From: Podarcis filfolensis
Lineage: Eukaryota
DNA: 64,000 nucleotides
Direction: 5' to 3' (one strand)
Assembly: GCA_964270895.1 (NCBI GenBank)
Contig: OZ185438.1
A model generated the notes under the pieces. It worked only from the letters and a program-made list of their open reading frames with translations, did not search any database and was not told where the DNA came from. Positions 6,190 through 55,928 of this stretch are shown piece by piece (positions within the stretch are counted from its first letter, which is position 1; every line of letters begins with the position of its first letter). The position numbers and the translations under genes are program-made.

Positions 6190-6915
6190 GAGACTATGGA
6201 GAGTGAGCACTTAATTGACCGGGGGCTGCCCAGCTAAAGGCGGGTGATAGCTGAGCAGGGAAGAGCGATGATCTCTCCCACTGATGAAGGCAACCTGTTG
6301 TGCTTCTACCTTGCTCCAATCAGGCTGAGCTTGTAATTCGTAACTGCTGCCTTCTGTGTTGTTTTTGCTGCATTTGCATCACTGAAGTGACCTTGCTGGG
6401 ATGCAAGCCTGGGAAGTGTGTATGCAGGTCCCGGGTTGCCCAGAATAGACTATCCCCCTCTTGGCCGGGCAGTGACAGAGCATGAAAGAGCAGTAGAGCT
6501 ACCCCTGTACCTGCAGTCCTATTGCTCAGCCAGGGAAATCATCATAGCAGCTTGGAGCTGGCTCAATAACTGGGCCTAGGCCATGCCTGATGTTCCCCAG
6601 TGGCACCAGGTCAGGAAACTTGGTAAGTGCACTTAACCAGGTTTAAAGCCCCAAAAGTGCCCTCACATGCTTTCACAACAACTTTTCAGGAGCTAATTCT
6701 AGGTGACAATCAACAACATTAACAAATTTGGTAATATCTGTATATTTAGGAAAGCCATTAGTGCATAGTATTATTATTTTATTATTACTTTAATAACTGT
6801 CTTCTTCATAAGTGTCTCGAGGTTATGTGCAATAAAAATGGCAAAAAACAGTTTAAAATTAAAAACACACACCAGCGGATACATTTAAAACTAAACTAAA
6901 ACAAAGTCCTATTTA

Positions 6916-7007
6916 CACAGCTGTCAACGTTTCCCCCCTTTTTAAAGGGAAATTCCCTTCTTCTGAATAGGATTCCTCGCAAGAAAAGGGAAAAGTTGAC
7001 AGCTATG
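6916..7007. mobile_element. Very short hAT MITE (92 bp)
   Basis: CACAGCTGTCAAC/GTTGACAGCTATG TIRs; exact TSD CCTATTTA. Confidence 0.88.
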
Positions 7008-7199
7008 CCTATTTATCCAGTTGGGAAAGCCTGTCCAAACAAAACTATGAACTGGCATCCATTTTCATTAGATGCTTAGGCTGGTCCATGCCTAGATTTC
7101 TCTTGATTTCTCTGCACTTCATGAGTGGACCATTTAACTATTGCATACAGCTTGATATACCGTAAATCACAAATGAATCAACCCTTGATAACTGAATCT

Positions 7200-7498
7200 G
7201 TGTGACGGTTTGAGCTCCCGTTGCTCTGTCCCCTAACCTAGCAGTTCAAAAGCACACCAGTGCAAGTAGCTAAATGGGTACCGCTACGCTGTGGCAGGAA
7301 AGTAAATGGTACTTCTGTGTGTTCTGGCATCTGTCACAGTCCTCCGTGCACCAGTAGCTGTTTAGTCCTGTTGGCCACATGACCTGGAAGGCTGTCTGTG
7401 GAGAAACGCTGGCTCCCTCGGCCTGAAAAGCAAGATGAGTGCCGCACCCCATAGTCGCATTTGACTGGACTTAATCGTCCAGGGGTCCTTTGCCTTAC
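7200..7498 (+). mobile_element. Sauria SINE, 5'-truncated
   Basis: Homologous to 37437-37805. Confidence 0.8.
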
Positions 7499-8709: not shown

Positions 8710-9080
8710 TACTGCAAAAGTGTCATCCCACCAGAATACTAATGTAGCCCATAGGTCTGTGCTAATGACTCTTTTTATCTCAAGAATGGAGGGGGAAATA
8801 CTGGAAGTTTCAATAGTTTGAAAACTTATTTTATTTAACTCCTAATTATTATGGAAACATAATCTGCATTAGTAATCCCATTCTGGTGTGATAATTATGT
8901 TAAACATATATGTGAGGGCAGAAAGCGATATGGCAGATTCAGATGCAAATTCTTTTGCGCGTCGAGGTCCCCAAGACACCCCCCCAAAGAAAACCACAAT
9001 TGACACTTAATTTTTGTTTAAGGTTTTTGGCATAATTTTGGCCACAACTTTATTCAAATTACAGCAATGTGAGTGGTTGC

Positions 9081-9483
9081 TTAGGCATTGGTAGCACTAA
9101 CTGACCCCGCACAGGGACAGCTCTGACATTCGTACCCCCCGCGAAGTCAGCAAGGGTAAGTCACCTGGGGAGAGAGACGGGACTGGGAACCATGCCTCAC
9201 CTCTCCCCAGAATGCTCCCAGGGGCTTGCGTGGCCCTAGCCCCTTGCCAGGGGGTTTCGGACAAAAGCATGGGGAGCCCCTGGGTTCCTTTAACGGAAAA
9301 CCCTTCAGCAGCAGCATTTTGGAGGGGCAGGCACAGCCAAATCCATACCCCTCCACCAGCAGCAGCATTTTGGAGGGGCAGGCACAGCCGAATCCATACC
9401 CCTCCACCAGCAGCAGCATTTTGGAGGGGCAGGCACAGCCGAATCCATACCCCTCCACCAACCAATTCCAGACCAATGCCTAA
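9081..9483. repeat. Ngaro 3' cassette 1, bounded by a perfect 12-bp inverted repeat and containing 3 x 51-bp tandem repeats (9307-9459)
   Basis: TTAGGCATTGGT at 9081-9092 and ACCAATGCCTAA at 9472-9483. Unit AGCAGCAGCATTTTGGAGGGGCAGGCACAGCCRAATCCATACCCCTCCACC. Confidence 0.9.
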
Positions 9484-9519
9484 CCGCCAACTGAGCACTG
9501 AAGCTCACCGCCAAACCAC

Positions 9520-10445
9520 TCACAAATGCAACCCTTCCTTCAATCCCAAAGCAACCGCAGCCAACCAGGTGTCGTTCCCTACAGGGGAAAGATATACCCC
9601 ATCTGTCCTAAAGAGGGCAACAGCATTGAAGGAAATAGCAGGGTGCAATATCACAGAACCACTGTTATTTTATTTATTTATTTATATATATTTTATTTTA
9701 TTTTTATTTATTTATTTTATTTTATTTTCCACCGCCTTATTAACATGCTTTCTGGCCTGCTCAGTGGTAGTTTAGGCATTGGTTCCGACTATCTGCACCT
9801 GACCTCAGCAGGGCAGCACTGACGACTGGGCCCCACCATATCATCAGTACAAGCAAACATTGTGGGTGAGCAATGAACCAGGATCAGACTCAAGCGCACC
9901 CCAAATTCTCCAGGGACCCTTGCGTGGCCCTACCCCTCGAAAGGGGTCGACAAAAGCATGGCGAATCCTTGGATTCCTTTAAAGGATTACCTTTGCGCAT
10001 TGGAGGGGACAGGTGCTCCGACCCCCCCTCCAGACTACCTTGAACCAATGCCTTAAATTATTTTGAGTCCAGGGAGAGCTGCCATCAACTCATCCAAGTC
10101 CTCCTGCATGCAGGAATGCAAACTTATGCTGTAAGAAGACGGCAAGTCATTCTCGTCCAGCGGCCCCACTAGCACTGCGGGAGGACCTGCACAGGTCACA
10201 CTCGACCGCACCAAAGGAAGGAACTCCTCCCAAAGCATTCCCCATCTGGACACCCAGTGTATGTTCACATGGGCAGGAAGACTGAGATGGCGCCCCAGTC
10301 TAGACTCGTCAGCGCGCTTGCCAGCCCAGTGTACAATGCTTTATTATTTTATTTATTTATTATTTTATTTTATTATTTTATTTTCCACCGCCTTATTAAC
10401 ATGCTTTCTGGCCTGCTCGACCACAATCCAAATGTGCACAGCTGC
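9520..10445 (-). pseudogene. SGNH/GDSL hydrolase ORF remnant of the Ngaro element (interrupted twice)
   Basis: HIWIV|SIVHWAGKRA...WGMLW...PPAVLVGPLDENDL...PGLKII|EQARKHVNKAV..GSVILHP...LFRTDGVYLS corresponds to SGNH blocks I, II, III and V. Confidence 0.8.
9772..10056. repeat. Cassette 2: diverged homolog of cassette 1 with the same terminal inverted repeat
   Basis: AGGCATTGGTT at 9774-9784 and AACCAATGCCT at 10043-10053. Shares CTTGCGTGGCCCTA, GACAAAAGCATGG, TTCCTTTA and TGGAGGGG..CCCCTCCA with cassette 1. Confidence 0.85.
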
Positions 10446-10488
10446 TCCTATGAAAAAAGGAAATAACAGACAGGCATCAGCACAGACA

Positions 10489-11369
10489 TCATTGGTGACA
10501 CTTCCTGATGTAACCCTTGTCAGCATCAGACTTCCAATGACCCGTATTCACAATCCTGTCTACTGACAGGCCCCCAGTGTGCAGCCTTTGCAGCAGCCCC
10601 ATTCGGAAGGAATGAGGCGTGTTCAGCGGTAGGCAAGCCACAGGCCGTAGTAACTGGTGCACGATGTAAGCACATTGATGCCTGGCTAACGGGAACCCAT
10701 TTTCATGCACTAGGAGCGGGCCAGCCCCCAGGGGAACAAAAAGCCAAATATTTCTGGTATCCATAAACCGGCGAGGTGAGGGGAAGCCTGATGGTGGCAC
10801 TCCTGCCCACTAGGTCTGTTTTAGAGTTCCCAACTCTAATGACCAGCTCCAAAGCAGATAAGGAAAAGTCCGGAAGCAATAAGCCTCCAGACTCTCAGCC
10901 CCGTGCTGGCTCCAACACAATTTCCCCAACCCTCAGTGCACCAAAAATGCAATGGAATACTGGAAGGAGTCTCGCCTTGATCTTTAACCAGCAGGCAAGT
11001 TATAACTTGTTGCAGATAGGTAAAAATTTACCGACTTCCTGCCCACTGTCGTATGAGGTTGGAGCCTATTCCAACCTTCCAAGGCCCTGTGCATGACAGA
11101 CTTTATACAAGGGTCTCTGCAAATTAAAGCTTTACTATAACAGACATTGCAGCGGACTGAATACTGATAGTTTTAACAGCACATCCAATCTGCAGCAGGT
11201 GGACCAAATACTGCAGGATCTGCTCACAGGATGGGGGCCAGTTCTTCTGAATGGCCGAGGACTGCCAGCTTAAGGCTAAGAAATCCATCCAGGCCTTCTC
11301 ATAAGAGCTAAAAGCAGAAGGGGAAATGGAAGCTGCTGCTCTCTGTAATTGACAACTAATTGTTGTCAA
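10489..11369 (-). pseudogene. Tyrosine recombinase remnant
   Basis: N-terminal SAFSSYEKAWMDF, then FGALRVGE (10921-10947), SKTD, PHSFR and GHWKSDADKGYIR: the catalytic R-K-H-R-Y motifs are recognisable. Confidence 0.9.
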
Positions 11370-11389
11370 AGTGCCACAGGTGGTCTGGA

Positions 11390-11830
11390 AAAGTTTGGCA
11401 GTAGCTGAGTGTCTGGAGCCCAGGATCTGAAGCGCTCCATCTGAAAATGGGATAGAGTGTCAGCGACATCATTAGAGGATCCCGTAATCAGGAGAGCAGA
11501 AAGCACAATATTAAACCTTAAGCGGCGCAGCTCGAAGTGTGAGCGGAGGGGCGGAGACTCTGCTGGAGCGTGAGGACTGTTTTGCCAAGACGCTCACCAC
11601 TGCCTGGTTATCAGACCAAAAGCAGATCCGATGGTCACTTAACTCCTCGGGCCACATGTGAACTGCTACTACAATGGGGAAAAACTCAAGAAAAGTTAGG
11701 TCACATAATTGCTTCACCACACTGGGCTTGAGACCATGGCTTTGCACACCAGCAGCCCCTGAAAGAATGAATGAATGAATAAATAAATAAATAAAAAACC
11801 AAAGGGCAAAGATCCAGCAGCATCTGCCTT
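11390..11830 (-). pseudogene. DIRS/Ngaro RNase H remnant
   Basis: DAAGSLPFG..FQG, LTFLEFFPIVVAVHMW, FWSDNQAVV and NDVADTLSHFQ match the DIRS-type RNase HI pattern. Confidence 0.88.
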
Positions 11831-13080
11831 CACCTCACTTGGTAAGCGTACATGAAGGTAAGGGGACCTCAGGCTGCAGGCAGCCTGGCCTAGCGGGAAT
11901 GGAAGGGGCGGCCTGGGGCAACACTCTGCATGCAAGATTAATTAAGTGACCCAGCAAGATTGGATCTGATGACACATCACTTGCTTCAGAGGAAGTATTA
12001 CAAAATAACTTCCTTCAAGGCAGACAGCTTTTCCATAGGCAAGTGGTATGTTTTAGGAATGATATCCATCTGGATCCCTAAATAAATGTGATTGGCTTGC
12101 CCTGCCAGGCTCAAGGCCGGTGTACATGATGATGATGAGACCCCGGGCGATGAGACAACCTGGCCAAGCAGGAATGGAAGGGGCAGCCTGGGGCAACCAC
12201 CCTGCATGCAAAATATAACTGACCTAGCAAATGAAAGGATCTGACAAAGCAACACTTGCTTCAGAGGAAGTATAACAAGAATAACTTCCTTCAAGGCAAA
12301 CAGCTTCACCACAGCAAGCAGATGTTTGAGCAACAATATCAAGCTAACCCCCAAATACATTAAAAGGGGCAGTAGGACCTACTGTCCCCTATCCACTGCC
12401 AACAGAACACCCAGCTCCCAGAGGGAACAAAGGGTGTCCAGAAAGCCTACGAAAAGGCTGGTGTCACATGAACCAGCCAGTAAAATAATCCAAATTAATG
12501 AGTCTTGACTCACACTGTTCAATCCAGAAAGGCGCTAAAGGACTTGAGTGCTGCACAGTATATTGCGCAACCCATCGGCATCGCCTTATCAATAATAAGG
12601 GCTCCATCCAAATTAAAGCCCAACCACTTAAAATCTCGAGGGTGAACCGGCAGCAGCCTAACAGCCGAATGAATATCGCATATTGCCAACAGGGCAGCTC
12701 TTCCAATTTGTTGGTAAGCTCAACCACCTGATCCAGAGACGCGTATTTCACGAAACAATTCTGGAAGGATAGCGTCATTCGCTGAGGTGCCTTTGGGCTG
12801 CGATAAATGAGGATCAGATGGAATTATATGGGGCTTTCTTAGGGACAATCCCCGATGGGGATAAATGAAGATCAGGAATAGAAGGAGGATCAAAGGGGAT
12901 CCCACCATACGTCTCAATGCAAGCTGCTTCCGAACCTTCTTTCAGGCTACCTCAGGTAGCTCTCTAACTGACTTTTGATTTGCTGTATTCCGAGACACTG
13001 GCTGAAGAGCCAGAGGAATCCCAAACCTTGAGAAAACCCTTGCAATCCCAGCAAGCTGTGGGAATGATGGCAGCCCTGCG
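11810..13080 (-). pseudogene. DIRS/Ngaro reverse transcriptase remnant
   Basis: Fragments NQKSVRELPEVA.KKVRKQ, PSDPHLSQPKGTSAND, VKYASLDQVVEL and YLGIQMD...LPMEKL resemble DIRS-order RT motifs. Confidence 0.82.
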
Positions 13081-13089
13081 TCTAACATT

Positions 13090-13316
13090 CTAAAATACAG
13101 TAAGGCATCAGACATTAAAAGCTTCCCTAAACAAGGCTGCCTTCAAATGTCTTCCAGAAGTCTGGTAGTTGACATCTGGTGGAGGGTGTTTCACAGGACG
13201 GGTGCCACCACCGAGAAGGCCCTCTGCCTGGCACCCTGCAACTTTGCTTCTCGCAGTGAGGTAACCACCAGAAGGCCCTCCGTGCTGGACCTCAGTGTCC
13301 AGGTAGAACGATGGGG
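13090..13316 (-). mobile_element. L2 fragment inserted upstream of the Ngaro RT
   Basis: Colinear with 3700-3930. Confidence 0.85.
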
Positions 13317-14060
13317 GAGCATGCAGCAGTCCCTTACAGGGACCAATCCTGCAACCTAGACATTACCAGCACCACGTGCTGACCAGCTGAGCTATCCAGG
13401 ATGATACTTAAATACCTGGAACAGCCTCACCCTGACCCCCGTAGAGGTCCAAGGTTATGTATGAATCATCATCAGAGCCCAGGGATGATGCACCTGCGCA
13501 AGTTGTCCGCATGTCCCCATCCCTGCGAGGAAGTGTAAGCATCATCCCTGCTCCTCTTTGCCCTCCTCCTGGATTGCCGCCTCCGAAGAGCTTCCTTCTG
13601 GAAGAAGGCACCTGGGGCACCAGCATGTCATCCGCTGCAGGAGAGGCAAGCTCTGGAGGCATCTGCAAAGGCCCTGCCATAGTCTGCAAAAAACTAAACA
13701 ATGTGAGGAACCGGTGAAACCAATGCTTCGTGCACCACTTGGGGACGCTATTCAGGCCAGAATCGCTGCCCGAGGCCATTGAATTCTAGGGCAAAGCGAG
13801 CAAAGCCTTAGGATCACCTGCTAGGCCTGACATAAATAATTCCAATGAAATAACAAACTCGAGGCAGCCCACCGCCTGACCAGGTACCCCTGCTTGCCCT
13901 TTTAGAGGGAAGCACCTCCTCAAGAAACCCAATTTTATTTTCATTTCCTTTCTTTTTTTGGGGGGGGGGGAGTGATGAAATCACAAATGGGCCCAACTAC
14001 CCAGCAACAGAATAGTCCAAAAGGAGCAGTTTGTTTTGTTTTGTTATAACAAGGGCTAAG

Positions 14061-25012: not shown

Positions 25013-25100
<88 letters not shown>
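25013..25100. repeat. Compound (GT)n(GA)n microsatellite
   Basis: Read directly. Confidence 0.95.
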
Positions 25101-25102
<2 letters not shown>

Positions 25103-27212
25103 CTTTAATCCCAGACCTGGTCATAATGCTGACATGCATTTTTATGTGTTTTTCCCTATTTTCTTTTTAAACCATTCCTTCACACTTAGTCAATGCATTT
25201 GTATTCTGTACTTTGTTGTAAAACACGACTGTTTGACGGGTTGTTTCTCAAACCAGCTTCACCCAGATTGGAGTCCTCAAGCCATTCCTAATTCATCCCC
25301 AACAAGGTGTGGACAGCTATGCACAGTTTACCTTCCCTGCCCCCTCATTAATGCCCCCTGGGGTGTACACAAACAGAAACAAATCTCACACTAATGAAGC
25401 TATTATGAAGAGCTAGGAGGGTGGAGGGGTGGGGGTGGGAGGAGCCGTGAAATACACCCGGGGGGAACACACCCATAGACAAAAATTTGCAGGAAGCTCT
25501 TTGTATTGGTCTTGTCTTCCACAAGACTGGGTCCTTGACCAGAGCCAGCTGTGCTCCTTGCTCAAATCAGAATAAAACTCCTCTTTATAAATTACTATTT
25601 TTAAGTTTCTGTTCAGGACATGAGAGCACTACATCTCCCAGCAGTGATAACTGTATCATTACAATCTGTGCATCCAGCAAGTATAGAGGAATAAAGAAAC
25701 AAGGCTGTTTTCAGCTTTAAAAAGAATCCTTTCCCCCAAGGAGACCCTTCTTGTTCTTCTTGTAATTAACGATCAGAAACTATTGATATCTGAATTAGCT
25801 AGAACAACAAGAACAAAAATAGATTAAAAAAAAATAAAATCCCAGAAGATCAAGCTATAGAAAGCTCTGTCTTAATCAAAGAGTGTGCATTTGTGATAGC
25901 AGAGATGGGCAGGTTTGTGCTATTTAAAAACAAGATGGTGAGAGAGGGAGGGAGAGAGACAGAATTTGTAGCATAACCAGGTCATTGGCCTCATCATGAT
26001 TTCAGTCCCATGCAACTTGACCTACTGCTTTATTAGCTCGGTTATTGTTTCTGTTCATGCCAGGGATAGAACAACAAAGTCAATGTAGAAATGTGATCTT
26101 CCTAAGAATTATACTAACAACTTGCTGTCCACACAATTAAATAATTCAGTGTAATTTCAGATACTCTAGTTTCCAGAATGCTTTGTCTGAGGTAAACTAT
26201 ATTAACCCTGGGGTTGGTGCGGCAAAAATCCTCCAGAATTTGTTCTCTAAAAGTGAGATACTTTAATTATGTTGTCCCTGCCAGGGCAGTTTTCTCAAGC
26301 ATAAACTCTGCAATGGCAAGCAAATTATAACTCTGTATGTGTGTTTTAAAGCAGCAGCCTTAAAAAATCTGCTAGTTTCCCCACTGAAAATATAACGCAG
26401 TCCATCCACAGCAGGAGCCGTAGCTTGTTAGCTGTAGTGTGGTCTAGGCAGGCAGGATAAGAGTGGACTTGGTCAGGGAGAGGAAGCCAATGAAGGCAAA
26501 GCCACAAGCCTCTTTAGGCTGCCCTAGGGGAGGTTTGAGGAATTCGATCTTTGCAAAATACTGAGTTCATGCTTCTTCAAATGTTGCATTTCTTGCAGAT
26601 TTAAATACCCGTTTTGAGAGAAAAGACACATTTAAATATGTATTAAAATATATAATTACATAATTTGGAATGAAAAAGCTGAGGACTACATCTACCCTTG
26701 CATTTTATTTACAGTGATTTGATCCTTGCAAATTCTCTTAGACGCTGCCTGCCTTAATGCCCAGGCCCCTCCTCTACACATTCTTTATATTCTTGTCAGT
26801 ATCTGCACTTGCTGATATTACCATACTACTTAAATAAGACTGGATAATATACTTATCTATGTAGTGCTGTTTAATGAATTCTGCCTCCCCGCTCCCCTTG
26901 CATTTATTTTCACCTTTTAGCTGTTCAGACACATTCTCCAAAAGCGAGGATGAGACAGTGCCGCTATATCTGAACCACATGATGATAGGAAAACGCTCGT
27001 GCAGACATATTTTGAGAGGAATGTAAAAATAATGTAGAGGTTATTGGAGAAATGTAATGTAACGGAAGTTTGAATTTAAAAGATGTGTGATTGACGTGGG
27101 CTGGAAGCAGACATATCCAACTTTCCATAGGGTGCCTGCAGCGCAGCTGCCTTTTGGCCAGTGCACTTTTTAAAACCCACTTTCACCCAGCCTTTGGAAG
27201 TAAGCTATCAAC

Positions 27213-52497: not shown

Positions 52498-55230
52498 TCA
52501 GATATTGGAAATTTCCACAGGCCTTTTCTCCAGCATATGAAGATCAATTCTTCCATTTAATGGGATTTGTACTTCCAAAGTTTCGTCTCCTCTGTGGTAC
52601 TTTCTTCCTCTCCTTAGGCAGATGTAAATACCCATTCCAGTTACCAATGTTATTGAACACAAGCTTATTACTGACAGGACCACTAAGGTAGGCATGCAAG
52701 ATGCTGATTCTACTCTTTTGTGTGTGGGTTCTATAGAGATTTGTGGTTCTTTTTCCTCAACGTTAATATCAGGTTCCTTTCTTAAAAGGCTTTCAATGTA
52801 GCTCTCGTTGCTCACAGTGTCATTGACAAAGAGGTTCACCATAACTGTGGAATGCAGAGGTTCTGGGTAACCATGATCACTAACCTTAACAAGAAGCCGA
52901 TAAAGGCCATAGTCGTTTTGCATTAGTGACTCCTCCAGAGTGATGTTGCCTGTCTTGGGGTCAATCTTAAAGGAGTCTGGCCGGGGACCTCTTCTCCCTA
53001 TGATGCTGTATGCTATGACTGCATTCATGCCGGTATCATTATCTACAGCATAAACTTCTGTGATAGGAGAGCCAGGTAGAGTAGAAGGGAGGACTAGGAG
53101 GTAAGACATGTTGGACTGTGGAAACAGGACCAAGGGTGGGTTATCATTGATGTCCAGCAAAAGGACAGTTATTTTTGCAGTCGAGGACAAGGCCGGATCA
53201 CCTCCATCGACTGCTTCAACCCATAAGATGTATGAGCTCTGCTGTTCCCTGTCTAGAGAGACCTTAGCTCTTAGCACTCCTTTGCCAGTGTCTATAACAA
53301 AGATGTCACTTCCATTTACAACAGAAAGTGCTACCCAGCCATTTTGCCCTATATCTGCATCCGTGACACTTATAACTCCAATTTCCCCAAAGCCTGGAAA
53401 ATTCTCTGGCACAAAAAAACTAAAATCCTTGTTGATAAATCTTGGACTGTTGTCATTTTTATCCAGTACAGAGATGGTAACTGTGGCTATTGATTCTCGG
53501 GCTGGTACTCCAGAATCTACTGCTTTAACTGTGTAGCGGTATTTTTCTCTCTCTTCTCTGTCCAGCTGGGTGGAAACTGTCAAAACTCCTGTGACTTTAT
53601 CTAAAGCAAAATATGAAGGGGCTTCAGGCCCTAGGAAATAAGACACTTGTCCTCTTTCTCCACTGTCAGCATCTGTTGCATGTAGCTTGGTCAAAAAAGC
53701 ATTGGGGACATTATTTTCTTCAATTGATAATTCTATCAGTGTTTGAGAAAAAACAGGTGAATTGTCATTATCATCCAGAACCTGCACTTTCACTATTTTA
53801 TTGACATGGAATCCTTCAGTATTCCATGCGATCACTGATACTTCATAGAACTGTTGAGCCTCATAATCCAATGGTTTTGTAGTCTCCAGCAAGTACTCAT
53901 TGTGATATGGTTTGTATGGTGACAACCTGAATGGGCCATCACCATCCAAATAGCAATCCACTTTGTATTTTTCGTCTGGATCTTTTATGGTAAAAAATGC
54001 TATCGGTGTGTTAACAGGCTCTAATTCCCTCAGGTAAACCACCCCTTCTACTTCATTAGCTATAAAACGAGGAATCACTTCAGGAGGTCTCATTGTGACT
54101 TTGATGATGGATATTAACACAGTGATCACTGCAGGGATACAACCGGGACCGTTGGCTAATACGCTCAACCGATGGAGACGAGGAGTGTCACCATTAATCC
54201 TCTTGGAGAGCTTGATAACACCTGTGCTTTCATCAAGATGAAACAAAGTGCGGGATGACTGAGAAACCTTCTGGCTGTAGGAATATGTGATCTCTGCATT
54301 GATTCCCTGATCCACATCCACAGCATGGACAGAGGCTATGGGCAACCCAATACTAGAATTCCCAAAAACTGTGACATTGATCTGGGTCTCATTGAACTGT
54401 GGGCAGTTGTCGTTGATGTCACTGATGCCAATAGTGAGGGTGGCACTGCCCACCAGTGGAGGGACTCCTCCATCCTCTGCAGTTATGAGGGTAATATATT
54501 TGTCTCTGGCCTCTCTGTCCAAGGCACCCATGACAATCAGGTAAGGCGTTCTTTCCCCACTTTCATTTTCCTCCACATCCAATGTAAAAACCCCAAAGTC
54601 ATCTTGCAGGTGGTATGTCTGGACCCCGTTGCTCCCCATGTCTGGGTCAACTGCCGGATGCTCTATAGCTAAACGGGTGTTGACTGGTGAGTTCTCAGGC
54701 ACAAAGAGGTGGATCTGTGGCATGGGAAAGCACGGGGCATTGTCATTGACATCGTGGATGGCAATCTTCACCTTGACAAGGCGGAAATACTCCTGAGGCA
54801 ACACCATAACATCCAGCAACAGCAAGCACGACTCAGAAGATGGTACTGGGGAGGAGGAGGAGGAGGAGGAGGCAACCACACTAGAGCCAACATTATCCTC
54901 TGTGCAGAGCGCCTCCCGGTCAATCTCCTTTGCGGAGGTGCGCAGTTCTCCAGTCTGGTTGTCCAGGTTCACATACTGACCTCCTAATCCCTGGGAGGCA
55001 AGGCTGAAGGAGAGAGGGGTTTTCCCCCATTGCTGAGGCTGCTGCTTCCCCTCTACTGTGGCCTCTCCCTCTCCCTCTGATGTTGCTTGGACCTGTAAAT
55101 CCTGGGCTAGATTCCCGATCAGGAACCCGGAGGGCAGCCCTTCATTGATGCTGTAGAAAAGTTCAGTGGCACGACTATAGCTTGCAAAGCAGTTGAAAGG
55201 TCCAAGGAAGAGCAGGAAAAGGAATAAGTT
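52498..55230 (-). CDS. PCDH20: Protocadherin-20 coding exon 2 (910 aa: signal-peptide core, 7 cadherin repeats, TM helix, short cytoplasmic tail)
   Basis: 916-aa ORF with cadherin linkers DVNDN/DINDN/DDNDN/DKNDN/DINDN, a TM segment (LVVLSVISLCSITLVTGMGIYICL) and the end ...EISNI, matching my recollection of mammalian PCDH20. The true exon start is the acceptor tttcctcAG at 55231-55232, with branch point CGCTAAC at 55254-55260. The ORF-track GTG start is intronic. Confidence 0.97.
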   Translation of the reverse strand, partial: NLFLFLLFLGPFNCFASYSRATELFYSINEGLPSGFLIGNLAQDLQVQATSEGEGEATVEGKQQPQQWGKTPLSFSLASQGLGGQYVNLDNQTGELRTSAKEIDREALCTEDNVGSSVVASSSSSSSPVPSSESCLLLLDVMVLPQEYFRLVKVKIAIHDVNDNAPCFPMPQIHLFVPENSPVNTRLAIEHPAVDPDMGSNGVQTYHLQDDFGVFTLDVEENESGERTPYLIVMGALDREARDKYITLITAEDGGVPPLVGSATLTIGISDINDNCPQFNETQINVTVFGNSSIGLPIASVHAVDVDQGINAEITYSYSQKVSQSSRTLFHLDESTGVIKLSKRINGDTPRLHRLSVLANGPGCIPAVITVLISIIKVTMRPPEVIPRFIANEVEGVVYLRELEPVNTPIAFFTIKDPDEKYKVDCYLDGDGPFRLSPYKPYHNEYLLETTKPLDYEAQQFYEVSVIAWNTEGFHVNKIVKVQVLDDNDNSPVFSQTLIELSIEENNVPNAFLTKLHATDADSGERGQVSYFLGPEAPSYFALDKVTGVLTVSTQLDREEREKYRYTVKAVDSGVPARESIATVTISVLDKNDNSPRFINKDFSFFVPENFPGFGEIGVISVTDADIGQNGWVALSVVNGSDIFVIDTGKGVLRAKVSLDREQQSSYILWVEAVDGGDPALSSTAKITVLLLDINDNPPLVLFPQSNMSYLLVLPSTLPGSPITEVYAVDNDTGMNAVIAYSIIGRRGPRPDSFKIDPKTGNITLEESLMQNDYGLYRLLVKVSDHGYPEPLHSTVMVNLFVNDTVSNESYIESLLRKEPDINVEEKEPQISIEPTHKRVESASCMPTLVVLSVISLCSITLVTGMGIYICLRRGRKYHRGDETLEVQIPLNGRIDLHMLEKRPVEISNI

Positions 55231-55928
55231 CTGAGGAAAGAGATGCACGTGACGTTAGCGAATGGCATGTCCATCTGAGAGCATCAGTTTAATCACCCCC
55301 TCTCCATTTTGCCCCCCAAAAGAGGTCTTTCTGTGCAAGACCTTGCATTGGACCATTATCTTCAGAATTCCTACCGAATTAACAATCCAGCCTACACAAA
55401 TCCACCATCTGAGTACATCCTCCTGAAAAATTTCCACCTGCCTCATATTTTTGACCTCTACACCCTCCCAATACTTAGTGCCAGTCTTCAGTCTAAATAG
55501 ATCACCATCTCCTTCTGTTGCACACAACCACCAGCCCTGAAACATGAAGTCCCCAAACTCACCATCAATAAATGAAGAGTTGTCATCCCGTTTACCCTTA
55601 ACTGTTAGTTTCCTCAATAAAACAGTCATAAAGAATTTGTTAAAAAGAAGCAGTATATGTATATGCTCAAAACCACATATGTTTGTGCCTATAAATCCCC
55701 ATGCTGCAGTCTAGATCACTATACAATGCCATAAAGGGTGGGAGAAACAGAAGCATATTTAAACTTCATCTTCAGTTTCCTCACTATCTCAAATGTATTA
55801 GCATTTTTGTCAAGCCATAAACAGATTGTGAGTGAAAACAAAACAGTGGGCAGCCATCTAGGAACAAAAGCATAAACCATCGTTCTCTGCATAAAATGCA
55901 TCACTGTTTAATTTTGTATTTTTCACTT

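Follow-up and report, generated by a model that had tools for sequence, protein, structure and literature searches.

The split direct repeat 'B' of Ngaro retrotransposons was described by Goodwin & Poulter (2004), as far as their account is summarised in PMC9210276. The folded domain considered here occupies the same place as this repeat, at the 3′ end of the element after the tyrosine recombinase (YR) and hydrolase genes; the window (the whole 64-kb stretch of DNA that was analysed) departs from the described layout in carrying one true B repeat and an extra cassette within the hydrolase gene, not a B1-A2-B2 arrangement. For elements of the DIRS order, the start of reverse transcription and the rebuilding of the ends are not known (PMC7192593). 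A hairpin at the 3′ end of DIRS-1 has been proposed to prime reverse transcription (Poulter & Goodwin, as cited in PMC7192593). This hairpin shares with the present domain the order of elements, the region of the RNA and the open question that it addresses, but it is only about 14 nt long, whereas the present domain is of 270–370 nt and comprises 13 helices. In the literature searched, no folded domain in the Ngaro B repeat and no non-autonomous lizard Ngaro is described.

In R2, reverse transcriptase (RT) recognises a fold in the 3′ UTR of the RNA; in stringent LINEs and their partner SINEs (e.g. UnaL2), the mark is the folded 3′ tail. Like these folds, the domain is 3′-terminal and non-coding, keeps its shape as the sequence drifts, and persists in deleted derivatives. 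The analogy is functional only; R2 and the stringent LINEs are target-primed non-LTR elements, whereas Ngaro uses a tyrosine recombinase and free cDNA. A second parallel is with the bacterial integron attC site and CTX phage site, folded single strands of 57–141 nt that are substrates of tyrosine recombinases. Imperfect inverted repeats, conservation of structure and not of sequence, short conserved ends and residence in a tyrosine recombinase element are shared with the present domain. However, the attC and CTX sites are simple hairpins with extrahelical bases, whereas the domain here favours the RNA-sense strand. On balance, it is probable that the two cassettes in the window are copies of a folded non-coding domain at the 3′ end of a Ngaro element and that this acts as a cis-acting RNA domain.

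The cassettes were delimited in an earlier, sequence-only reading by a shared 11–12-bp inverted repeat, and this is borne out. With up to one mismatch, TTAGGCATTGGT occurs at exactly four sites in the window, which form two inverted pairs, 9081-9092(+) with 9472-9483(−) and 9772-9783(+) with 10044-10055(−); the chance expectation is 0.42 sites, and four were reached in none of 100 shuffles. A core site of the lox/FRT/dif type, with a spacer of 6–8 bp, was considered and rejected, as the cassette arms are 256–379 nt apart. The internal stems named in that reading are likewise all present. The CCCC..GGGG stem lies at 9241-9255 in cassette 1 and 9933-9946 in cassette 2. The TGGAGGGG..CCCCTCCA stem occurs once in cassette 2 (approximately 10001-10033) and three times in cassette 1, where the three stems sit within an array of 51-nt tandem units (9306-9460). 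The CTGACATTCG..CGAAGTCAG stem of cassette 1 (9124-9151) has an equivalent, CTGACGA..TCATCAG, in cassette 2 (9821-9849). Overall, the cassettes are 59% identical over 296 aligned columns, and in a BLAST comparison of one with the other only 9205-9305 with 9899-9994 (some 100 nt in the centre, at 78%) and the 5′ flanks align. In minus-strand folds of both cassettes, the inverted repeat forms the closing helix of a multi-helix junction. Folding z-scores are −2.6 for cassette 2 and −5.7 for cassette 1, the latter value exaggerated by its tandem hairpins; including the flanks of cassette 1 gives −6.1. The folded domain exceeds the limits first noted: it begins at the stop codon of the hydrolase gene (9522-9520) and ends immediately ahead of AATAAA (9054-9049).

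The sequence is that of a vertebrate; there are no long ORFs near the cassettes, and no conserved ORF runs through the cassette domain. Stop-to-stop frames on the minus strand contain remnants resembling RT, RNase H and tyrosine recombinase; a Pfam search of ten such frames of the broken element gave no hits. An exhaustive HMMER (phmmer) search with the recombinase piece at 10492-10809(−) gave 76 hits, with E values down to 3e-11. Among the full-length hits, the highest-ranking are recombinase-like proteins from Podarcis muralis, the gecko Paroedura picta and the frog Eleutherodactylus coqui, and one hit (from Paroedura) is named an integrase/recombinase XerD homolog. The hits to this piece are recombinase C-termini, and the element therefore has the tyrosine recombinase characteristic of Ngaro. 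In the related copy L002, an intact SGNH hydrolase ORF of 177–191 aa comes after the recombinase ORF, and the relative P0077 carries PF13472 (SGNH hydrolase). An SGNH hydrolase after the recombinase, with no methyltransferase, is a vertebrate Ngaro trait. Upstream of the recombinase, where RT/RNase H would be placed, window DNA is similar to the RNase H ORF of L002, although the window fragments themselves have no Pfam hits; in the relative L006, RVT_1 is found on the gene corresponding to the RNase H ORF. The recombinase matches, together with hydrolase fragments matching the L002 ORF, identify the element as a Ngaro-type retrotransposon on the minus strand. Split direct repeats in the order A1 ... 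B1-A2-B2 are absent from the window, which has no A1 and no second tail. Each of five Podarcis copies has a single B, and no upstream partner of the 3′ repeats was found in the window or in L001, L002, L004, L005 or L006. The window copy is a truncated, rearranged and dead member of Ngaro.

Read along the minus strand, the element begins with RNase H and RT remnants (11514..12941), placed by DNA similarity to the L002 RNase H ORF and by RT/RH motifs read by eye. These are followed by tyrosine recombinase fragments (10492..11459) with stops and frameshifts, placed by phmmer and by DNA similarity to L002. The hydrolase gene is in pieces. Its N-terminal fragment (10057..10340) corresponds to L002 residues 13-107 (BLASTP E 8e-24, 44% identity) and is preceded by T1 (10341..10418), which lies between hydrolase residues VG and HS and is a second copy of a short hydrolase segment and microsatellite also found as T2 (38/38 identical). 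Cassette 2 and a 9-nt tail stub (9771→9763) together span 9763..10056 (covariance model E 2e-20) and replace hydrolase residues ~108-126, with inner helix arms at 10044-10056 and 9772-9783. T2 (9661..9762) comprises hydrolase residues ~127-138 (EQARKHVNKAVE, 9762→9727, which matches the homologous place in five hydrolases) and then an AT-rich microsatellite that replaces about seven codons. The C-terminal hydrolase fragment (9523..9669) corresponds to L002 residues ~146-190 (BLASTP E 1e-13, 47% identity).

The remainder is non-coding, apart from an overlap at its start: the 5′ strand of an outer helix (9524→9514) overlaps the hydrolase stop codon (9522→9520). A small hairpin (9507→9492), present in minimum free energy (MFE) and consensus folds, and GGCGG (9488→9484), the base run that opens the B repeat of an intact frog element, lead into cassette 1 (9073..9483, given also as 9483→9072; covariance model R1 E 2e-21, and MFE fold). 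The inner closing helix arms of cassette 1 (9472-9483 and 9081-9092) enclose a multi-helix interior, which includes the three tandem 51-nt units at 9306..9460 (TRF 3.0 copies, 99%), each forming one G-rich hairpin (TGGAGGGG..CCCCTCCA); contig joints indicate that the number of these units differs among genomic copies. The 3′ strand of the outer helix, AACCACTCACA (9068..9078), is complementary to 9514-9524 at 11/11 positions and is paired with it in the MFE and consensus folds. The terminal (B) repeat tail (8957..9072) is homologous to the tails of L001, L002 and L006, and contains AATAAAGTTGTGGCC (9054→9040), located by motif search. The 3′ end of the element is placed at ~8957, as contigs of two related species track the flank to 8956 and then diverge.

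In five Podarcis muralis Ngaro copies the module is found at the same place, with both 11-bp arms unchanged. All five have the same order: the hydrolase stop, ~35 nt ending in GGCGG, TAGGCATTGG...CCAATGCCTA enclosing ~250 nt, and the tail, which opens with a complement of the last part of the hydrolase gene and contains AATAAAGTTGTGGCC. Cassette 1 has this context (stop at 9522-9520, GGCGG at 9488-9484, AATAAAGTTGTGGCC at 9054-9040). In cassette 2, hydrolase codon ~107 runs straight into the 5′ arm, and no more than 9 nt of tail remain past the 3′ arm. As hydrolase fragments flank cassette 2 and precede cassette 1, cassette 2 interrupts a single hydrolase gene. The junction between hydrolase and cassette 2 is shared by L003, a sister copy from a public run (92.6% identical), and in two related genomes several contigs join cassette 2 straight to a normal tail (joint 9059→9763). 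This indicates that cassette 2 belongs to a deletion subfamily, which lost the rest of the hydrolase and kept the cassette and tail. Cassettes 1 and 2 represent two subfamilies, and not a local duplication. The breakpoint of the deletion subfamily is exactly the first base of the inner helix; the subfamily lacks the outer helix, small hairpin and GGCGG, and still multiplied, to tens to hundreds of copies. The pairing of cassettes in the window, with cassette 1 in its normal place and cassette 2 inside the same hydrolase gene, would on this evidence be an accident of rearrangement.

T1 and T2 start at the same base, which would fit copy-choice by reverse transcriptase from a 5′-truncated RNA. 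Three other readings of this part of the locus were rejected. The 74-nt T1/T2 unit (9689-9762, 10345-10418) is not a LINE 3′ tail, as it reads EQARKHVNKAVE, hydrolase residues ~127-138, and has a depth of only ~15-25x in related genomes. Cassette 2, spacer and cassette 1 do not form B1-A2-B2; the spacer codes for hydrolase, cassette 2 is tail-less and in other copies it runs straight into a tail. Tandem duplication of a unit of ~690 bp is inconsistent with hydrolase pieces that are different parts of the gene, and with cassettes that are 59% alike while the T units are identical. Three Logan contigs containing hydrolase (L010-L012) stop before the cassette.

Contigs of two related genomes were aligned to 8800-10900, where the single-copy flank has a depth of ~97 and ~70. 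Relative to single copy, depth is ~9,500-fold in the tail bin 9013-9083, 250–1,900-fold in cassette 1 and 30–570-fold in cassette 2, with only 15–70-fold over hydrolase and recombinase sequence. Past the 5′ arm of cassette 1, the majority of other copies share one consensus sequence (agreement 0.95), which on the element strand ends ...GTCACAACTTGTAAGGTT before GCGG and resembles the end of a frog A2 repeat, ...GTCACAGCTTAGGGTTA before GGCGG. This suggests that most genomic cassettes follow an A repeat and not a hydrolase gene, and loose ends in contig depth suggest A-B junctions elsewhere in the genome. The cassettes behind an A repeat may be solo A-B remnants, formed in the manner of solo LTRs, or non-autonomous A-B elements. 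As solo remnants explain the excess equally well, cassette abundance is not counted as evidence for a requirement in cis; the position of the deletion-subfamily breakpoint at the inner helix carries more weight. RNA reads are few, run in both directions and show no poly(A) end.

Conservation of the fold was assessed by RNAalifold on an alignment of seven cassettes (two from the window and five from Podarcis), which gave the closing helix and nine internal helices. Within the cassette, standard pairs make up 88.3% of pair cells, compared with 33–54% when the 3′ partners are slid by 1–3 columns, and there are 16 compensatory pairs, compared with 7.8 ± 2.0 in shuffles (0/500) and 5–9 when slid. 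A whole-domain alignment of six sequences, from the hydrolase stop to AATAAA, adds the small hairpin and the outer helix of ~26 bp, the 5′ strand of which is formed by the last hydrolase codons and the 3′ strand by the start of the tail. In the whole domain, 99 pairs are predicted, 90.4% of cells are paired, compared with 36–50% when slid, and 25 pairs are compensatory, compared with 11.1 ± 2.3 in shuffles (0/500) and 6–11 when slid. The covariation rests on six to seven sequences with an effective number of ~3, and the slid and shuffled controls flatter the structure, since it was predicted from the same alignments. Within these bounds, the suggestion that structure is kept above primary sequence holds, with compensatory changes exceeding both controls. 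The outer helix has been replaced wholesale between lineages: where the window has TGTGAGTGGTT/AACCACTCACA, Podarcis has AGGTATTGGC/GCCAATACCT with extensions. Duplexes of this helix have energies of −35 to −41 kcal/mol, whereas shuffles give about −20 ± 3.5, and four of the five Podarcis copies lie far below the shuffles.

The sequence-only reading did not recognise the cassettes as a described element, in agreement with the Rfam results: no cassette match was found at E values up to 1 in the window and up to 0.5 in four relatives (L002, L006, L007 and L008), nor any to hammerhead, HDV-like or twister ribozymes in the same sequences. A hammerhead reading was rejected, as CUGAUGA is present in cassette 2 only and has no Rfam support. 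The inverted repeat, whose conservation among homologs was proposed as a check, is kept in every homolog found. The covariance model, also proposed there, had a divided outcome. A model of a 135-nt core built from lacertids finds all lacertid copies (E 1e-16 to 1e-34), and detects neither the gecko nor the frog module, even with filters off.

Comparison with the gecko and frog elements defines what is conserved more widely. The gecko copy has a closing helix of 21–30 bp, unrelated in sequence, at the same place, and its fold has a z-score of −7.2. In the frog, the intact element L008 carries split direct repeats: A1 (898-1060) is equal to A2 (6859-7021), and B1 (6598-6859) to B2 (7112-7373), the latter pair at 99%. 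Its B repeat includes AATAAAGCTGTGGCC and opens with GGCGG, immediately following the hydrolase gene; this layout indicates that the lacertid domain and tail are the B repeat. The frog B repeat folds no better than shuffles (z 0.0 to −2.0). Beyond the lacertids, the features in common are the position, GGCGG, the closing helix and the tail motif, and not the internal architecture.

The most likely mechanism can be set out as follows. The domain lies between the SGNH-hydrolase stop codon and the conserved AATAAAGYTGTGGCC, inside what is the 'B' split direct repeat of the intact relative. The inverted repeat first noted is its inner closing helix; outside this lie GGCGG, the small hairpin and the outer helix of ~26 bp, the last pairing the final hydrolase codons with the start of the tail, and its interior holds a G-rich hairpin plus four to five helices that make up a central domain. 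By analogy with the R2 3′ UTR and the 3′ tails of stringent LINEs, such a structure would most likely be a docking or start signal for the reverse transcriptase or Gag of the element, with recognition by the element's own proteins occurring at the start of reverse transcription or at RNA packaging.

The strand on which the fold is best formed bears on this. In the consensus, G-U pairs outnumber A-C pairs by 60:14 (4.3 to 1), whereas slid controls give ratios of 1.0–1.2, and the MFE of the coding strand is below that of the antisense strand in 13/13 folds, by 4–40 kcal/mol. This coding-strand bias favours RNA, or the plus strand of DNA, over first-strand cDNA. We infer that the domain works as a folded sense-strand RNA and is needed in cis for replication.

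A less likely reading is that the fold acts as DNA, as a single-stranded or cruciform substrate or guide for the tyrosine recombinase, or in end joining at a circle junction. Both 11-bp arms are invariant among the lacertid copies, as expected of a protein-binding sequence, and the invariance of the inner helix means that within lacertids pairing cannot be separated from protein recognition of the sequence. The cDNA intermediates of DIRS-1 are single-stranded (PMC7192593), both junctions of the cassette 2 rearrangement fall at the base of the helix (one precisely at the 5′ arm, the other 9 nt beyond the 3′ arm), and the domain lies in the B repeat, which helps to restore the ends. However, first-strand cDNA is antisense, in which 60/585 pair cells become A-C mismatches and which folds worse in all 13 comparisons, although plus-strand DNA would still fit. 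In addition, the arms are ~250 nt apart, compared with 6–8 bp in known recombinase core sites, and the sequence of the closing helix is quite different in the gecko. The cis-acting RNA domain is preferred. The more specific proposal that the B-repeat fold is the Ngaro RT start site, by docking or as a self-primer, or else an attC-like ssDNA substrate of a eukaryotic tyrosine recombinase, is speculative and is put forward tentatively.

It is distinctly unlikely that the domain has no function of its own and is a G+C-rich, hairpin-prone spacer riding with the terminal repeat, its apparent covariation arising from few, related sequences and from a structure predicted on them. The sample is indeed small, several consensus helices have 15–20% unpaired cells, the hairpin unit expands and contracts freely, and the frog repeat gives no folding signal. 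A passive spacer is difficult to reconcile with arms that are invariant in seven sequences at 44–59% overall identity between species, with outer and closing helices wholly replaced between lineages, with a G-U/A-C asymmetry that is missing from the slid controls, and with a deletion subfamily that ends precisely at a helix.

The chances are slimmer still that the domain controls 3′-end formation, the outer helix masking the start of AAUAAA at the hydrolase-B1 boundary and so allowing read-through to B2, whereas behind an A repeat the helix would be unable to form and the signal would be used. The 3′ strand of the outer helix does end at AATAAA and includes the first three bases of this signal in the pairing (columns 13-15 with 517-519), its 5′ strand consists of hydrolase codons, found only upstream of B1, and AATAAAGYTGTGGCC is kept from frog to lizards. 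Against this, just 3/6 bases of the signal are paired, no poly(A) ends are seen in RNA reads, the copies studied have a single B, and in the frog the two contexts show no such difference in folding.

Of the two suggestions made from the sequence alone, the cis-acting RNA/ssDNA module stands as the best reading, and the small unit moving on its own does not: a check for standalone copies found no target-site duplication and a module always placed after the hydrolase stop and before AATAAAGYTGTGGCC. That each cassette is a MITE-like inverted-repeat transposon inserted independently, as terminal inverted repeats of 11–15 bp, a size of ~270–400 bp, the position of cassette 2 inside a gene and TAA at both of its ends might imply, is very improbable, given a module that keeps its place in every Ngaro copy of three lizard lineages, the lack of a consistent duplication (TTA/TAA, GTA/TAA, and CAA at the L003 left end), conserved flanks that pair with each other, and a single consensus (0.95 agreement) upstream of other copies.

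At the level of the window the result is modest, as the copy is dead and rearranged. In annotation, caution is warranted: hairpin cassettes with terminal inverted repeats in squamates can be Ngaro ends and not MITEs. More generally, this is a folded terminal-repeat domain in a retrotransposon order without one in the literature searched. Deleted subfamilies keep the domain, and elsewhere in the genome its copies far outnumber those of the coding genes. Conserved, covarying and fixed in position within the terminal repeat, it offers a concrete target for probing, binding and mutation in the study of DIRS/Ngaro/PAT replication. If true, the reading of the fold as an RT start site or an attC-like substrate would, for tyrosine-recombinase retrotransposons, define a cis-acting replication signal for the first time.

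When contigs of two related species' genomes are aligned to 8800-10900, the tail bin (9013-9083) reaches approximately 9,500 times the depth of the single-copy flank, and stands 5-10-fold above the adjacent bins. This bin holds the motif AATAAAGTTGTGGCC, which is common to frog elements and, with one extra A, to gecko elements. Upstream of most cassette-1-type genomic copies, in the loose ends that extend beyond 9487, the consensus is similar to the frog A2 repeat at its 3' end. By depth, junctions in which A precedes B outnumber those in which the hydrolase precedes B by about 40 to 1.

Within cassette 1, a 51-nt hairpin unit is present in three copies (9306-9460). The number of units differs in other genomic copies, where joints skip or repeat 101-166 nt. 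A piece of the hydrolase (EQARKHVNKAVE), together with an AT-rich microsatellite, occurs as two identical copies at 10341-10418 and 9661-9762. One copy lies at its natural position and the other is inserted close to the hydrolase N-terminus; both begin at the same base. A copy-choice event is a possible source of the doubled unit.

The frog element L008 (898-7373; Eleutherodactylus coqui) is an apparently intact canonical Ngaro, with identical A1 and A2 repeats (100%) and B1 and B2 repeats at 99%. It is located in a gene model for Dishevelled, within a stretch that looks like an intron. L009, a recombinase-bearing element on an ENA contig, has direct repeats 3' of the recombinase gene (6440-6650 and 6917-7125), but these do not resemble the module seen in lizards. 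In L007, one of the relatives searched against Rfam, a perfect palindromic hairpin at 9137-9228 matched several miRNA models on both strands, below threshold; this is probably a repeat hairpin, unrelated to the B-repeat fold.

Recognizable Ngaro sequence in the window is bounded on its 5' side by a LINE/SINE-like repeat, of which the 3' end is present (13092-13400, minus strand). A similar sequence, inserted at 25075-26330, splits the hydrolase of the Ngaro copy L001. The sole long ORF in the window (52498-55248, minus strand) encodes 916 aa.

At the 3' end of the element, the left flank (8801-8956) is matched with 2-3 differences by contigs of the two related species, which run on into other sequence from 8956/8957. 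This boundary may correspond to an empty site. If so, the window Ngaro copy, despite its many stops, may represent a lineage-specific insertion.
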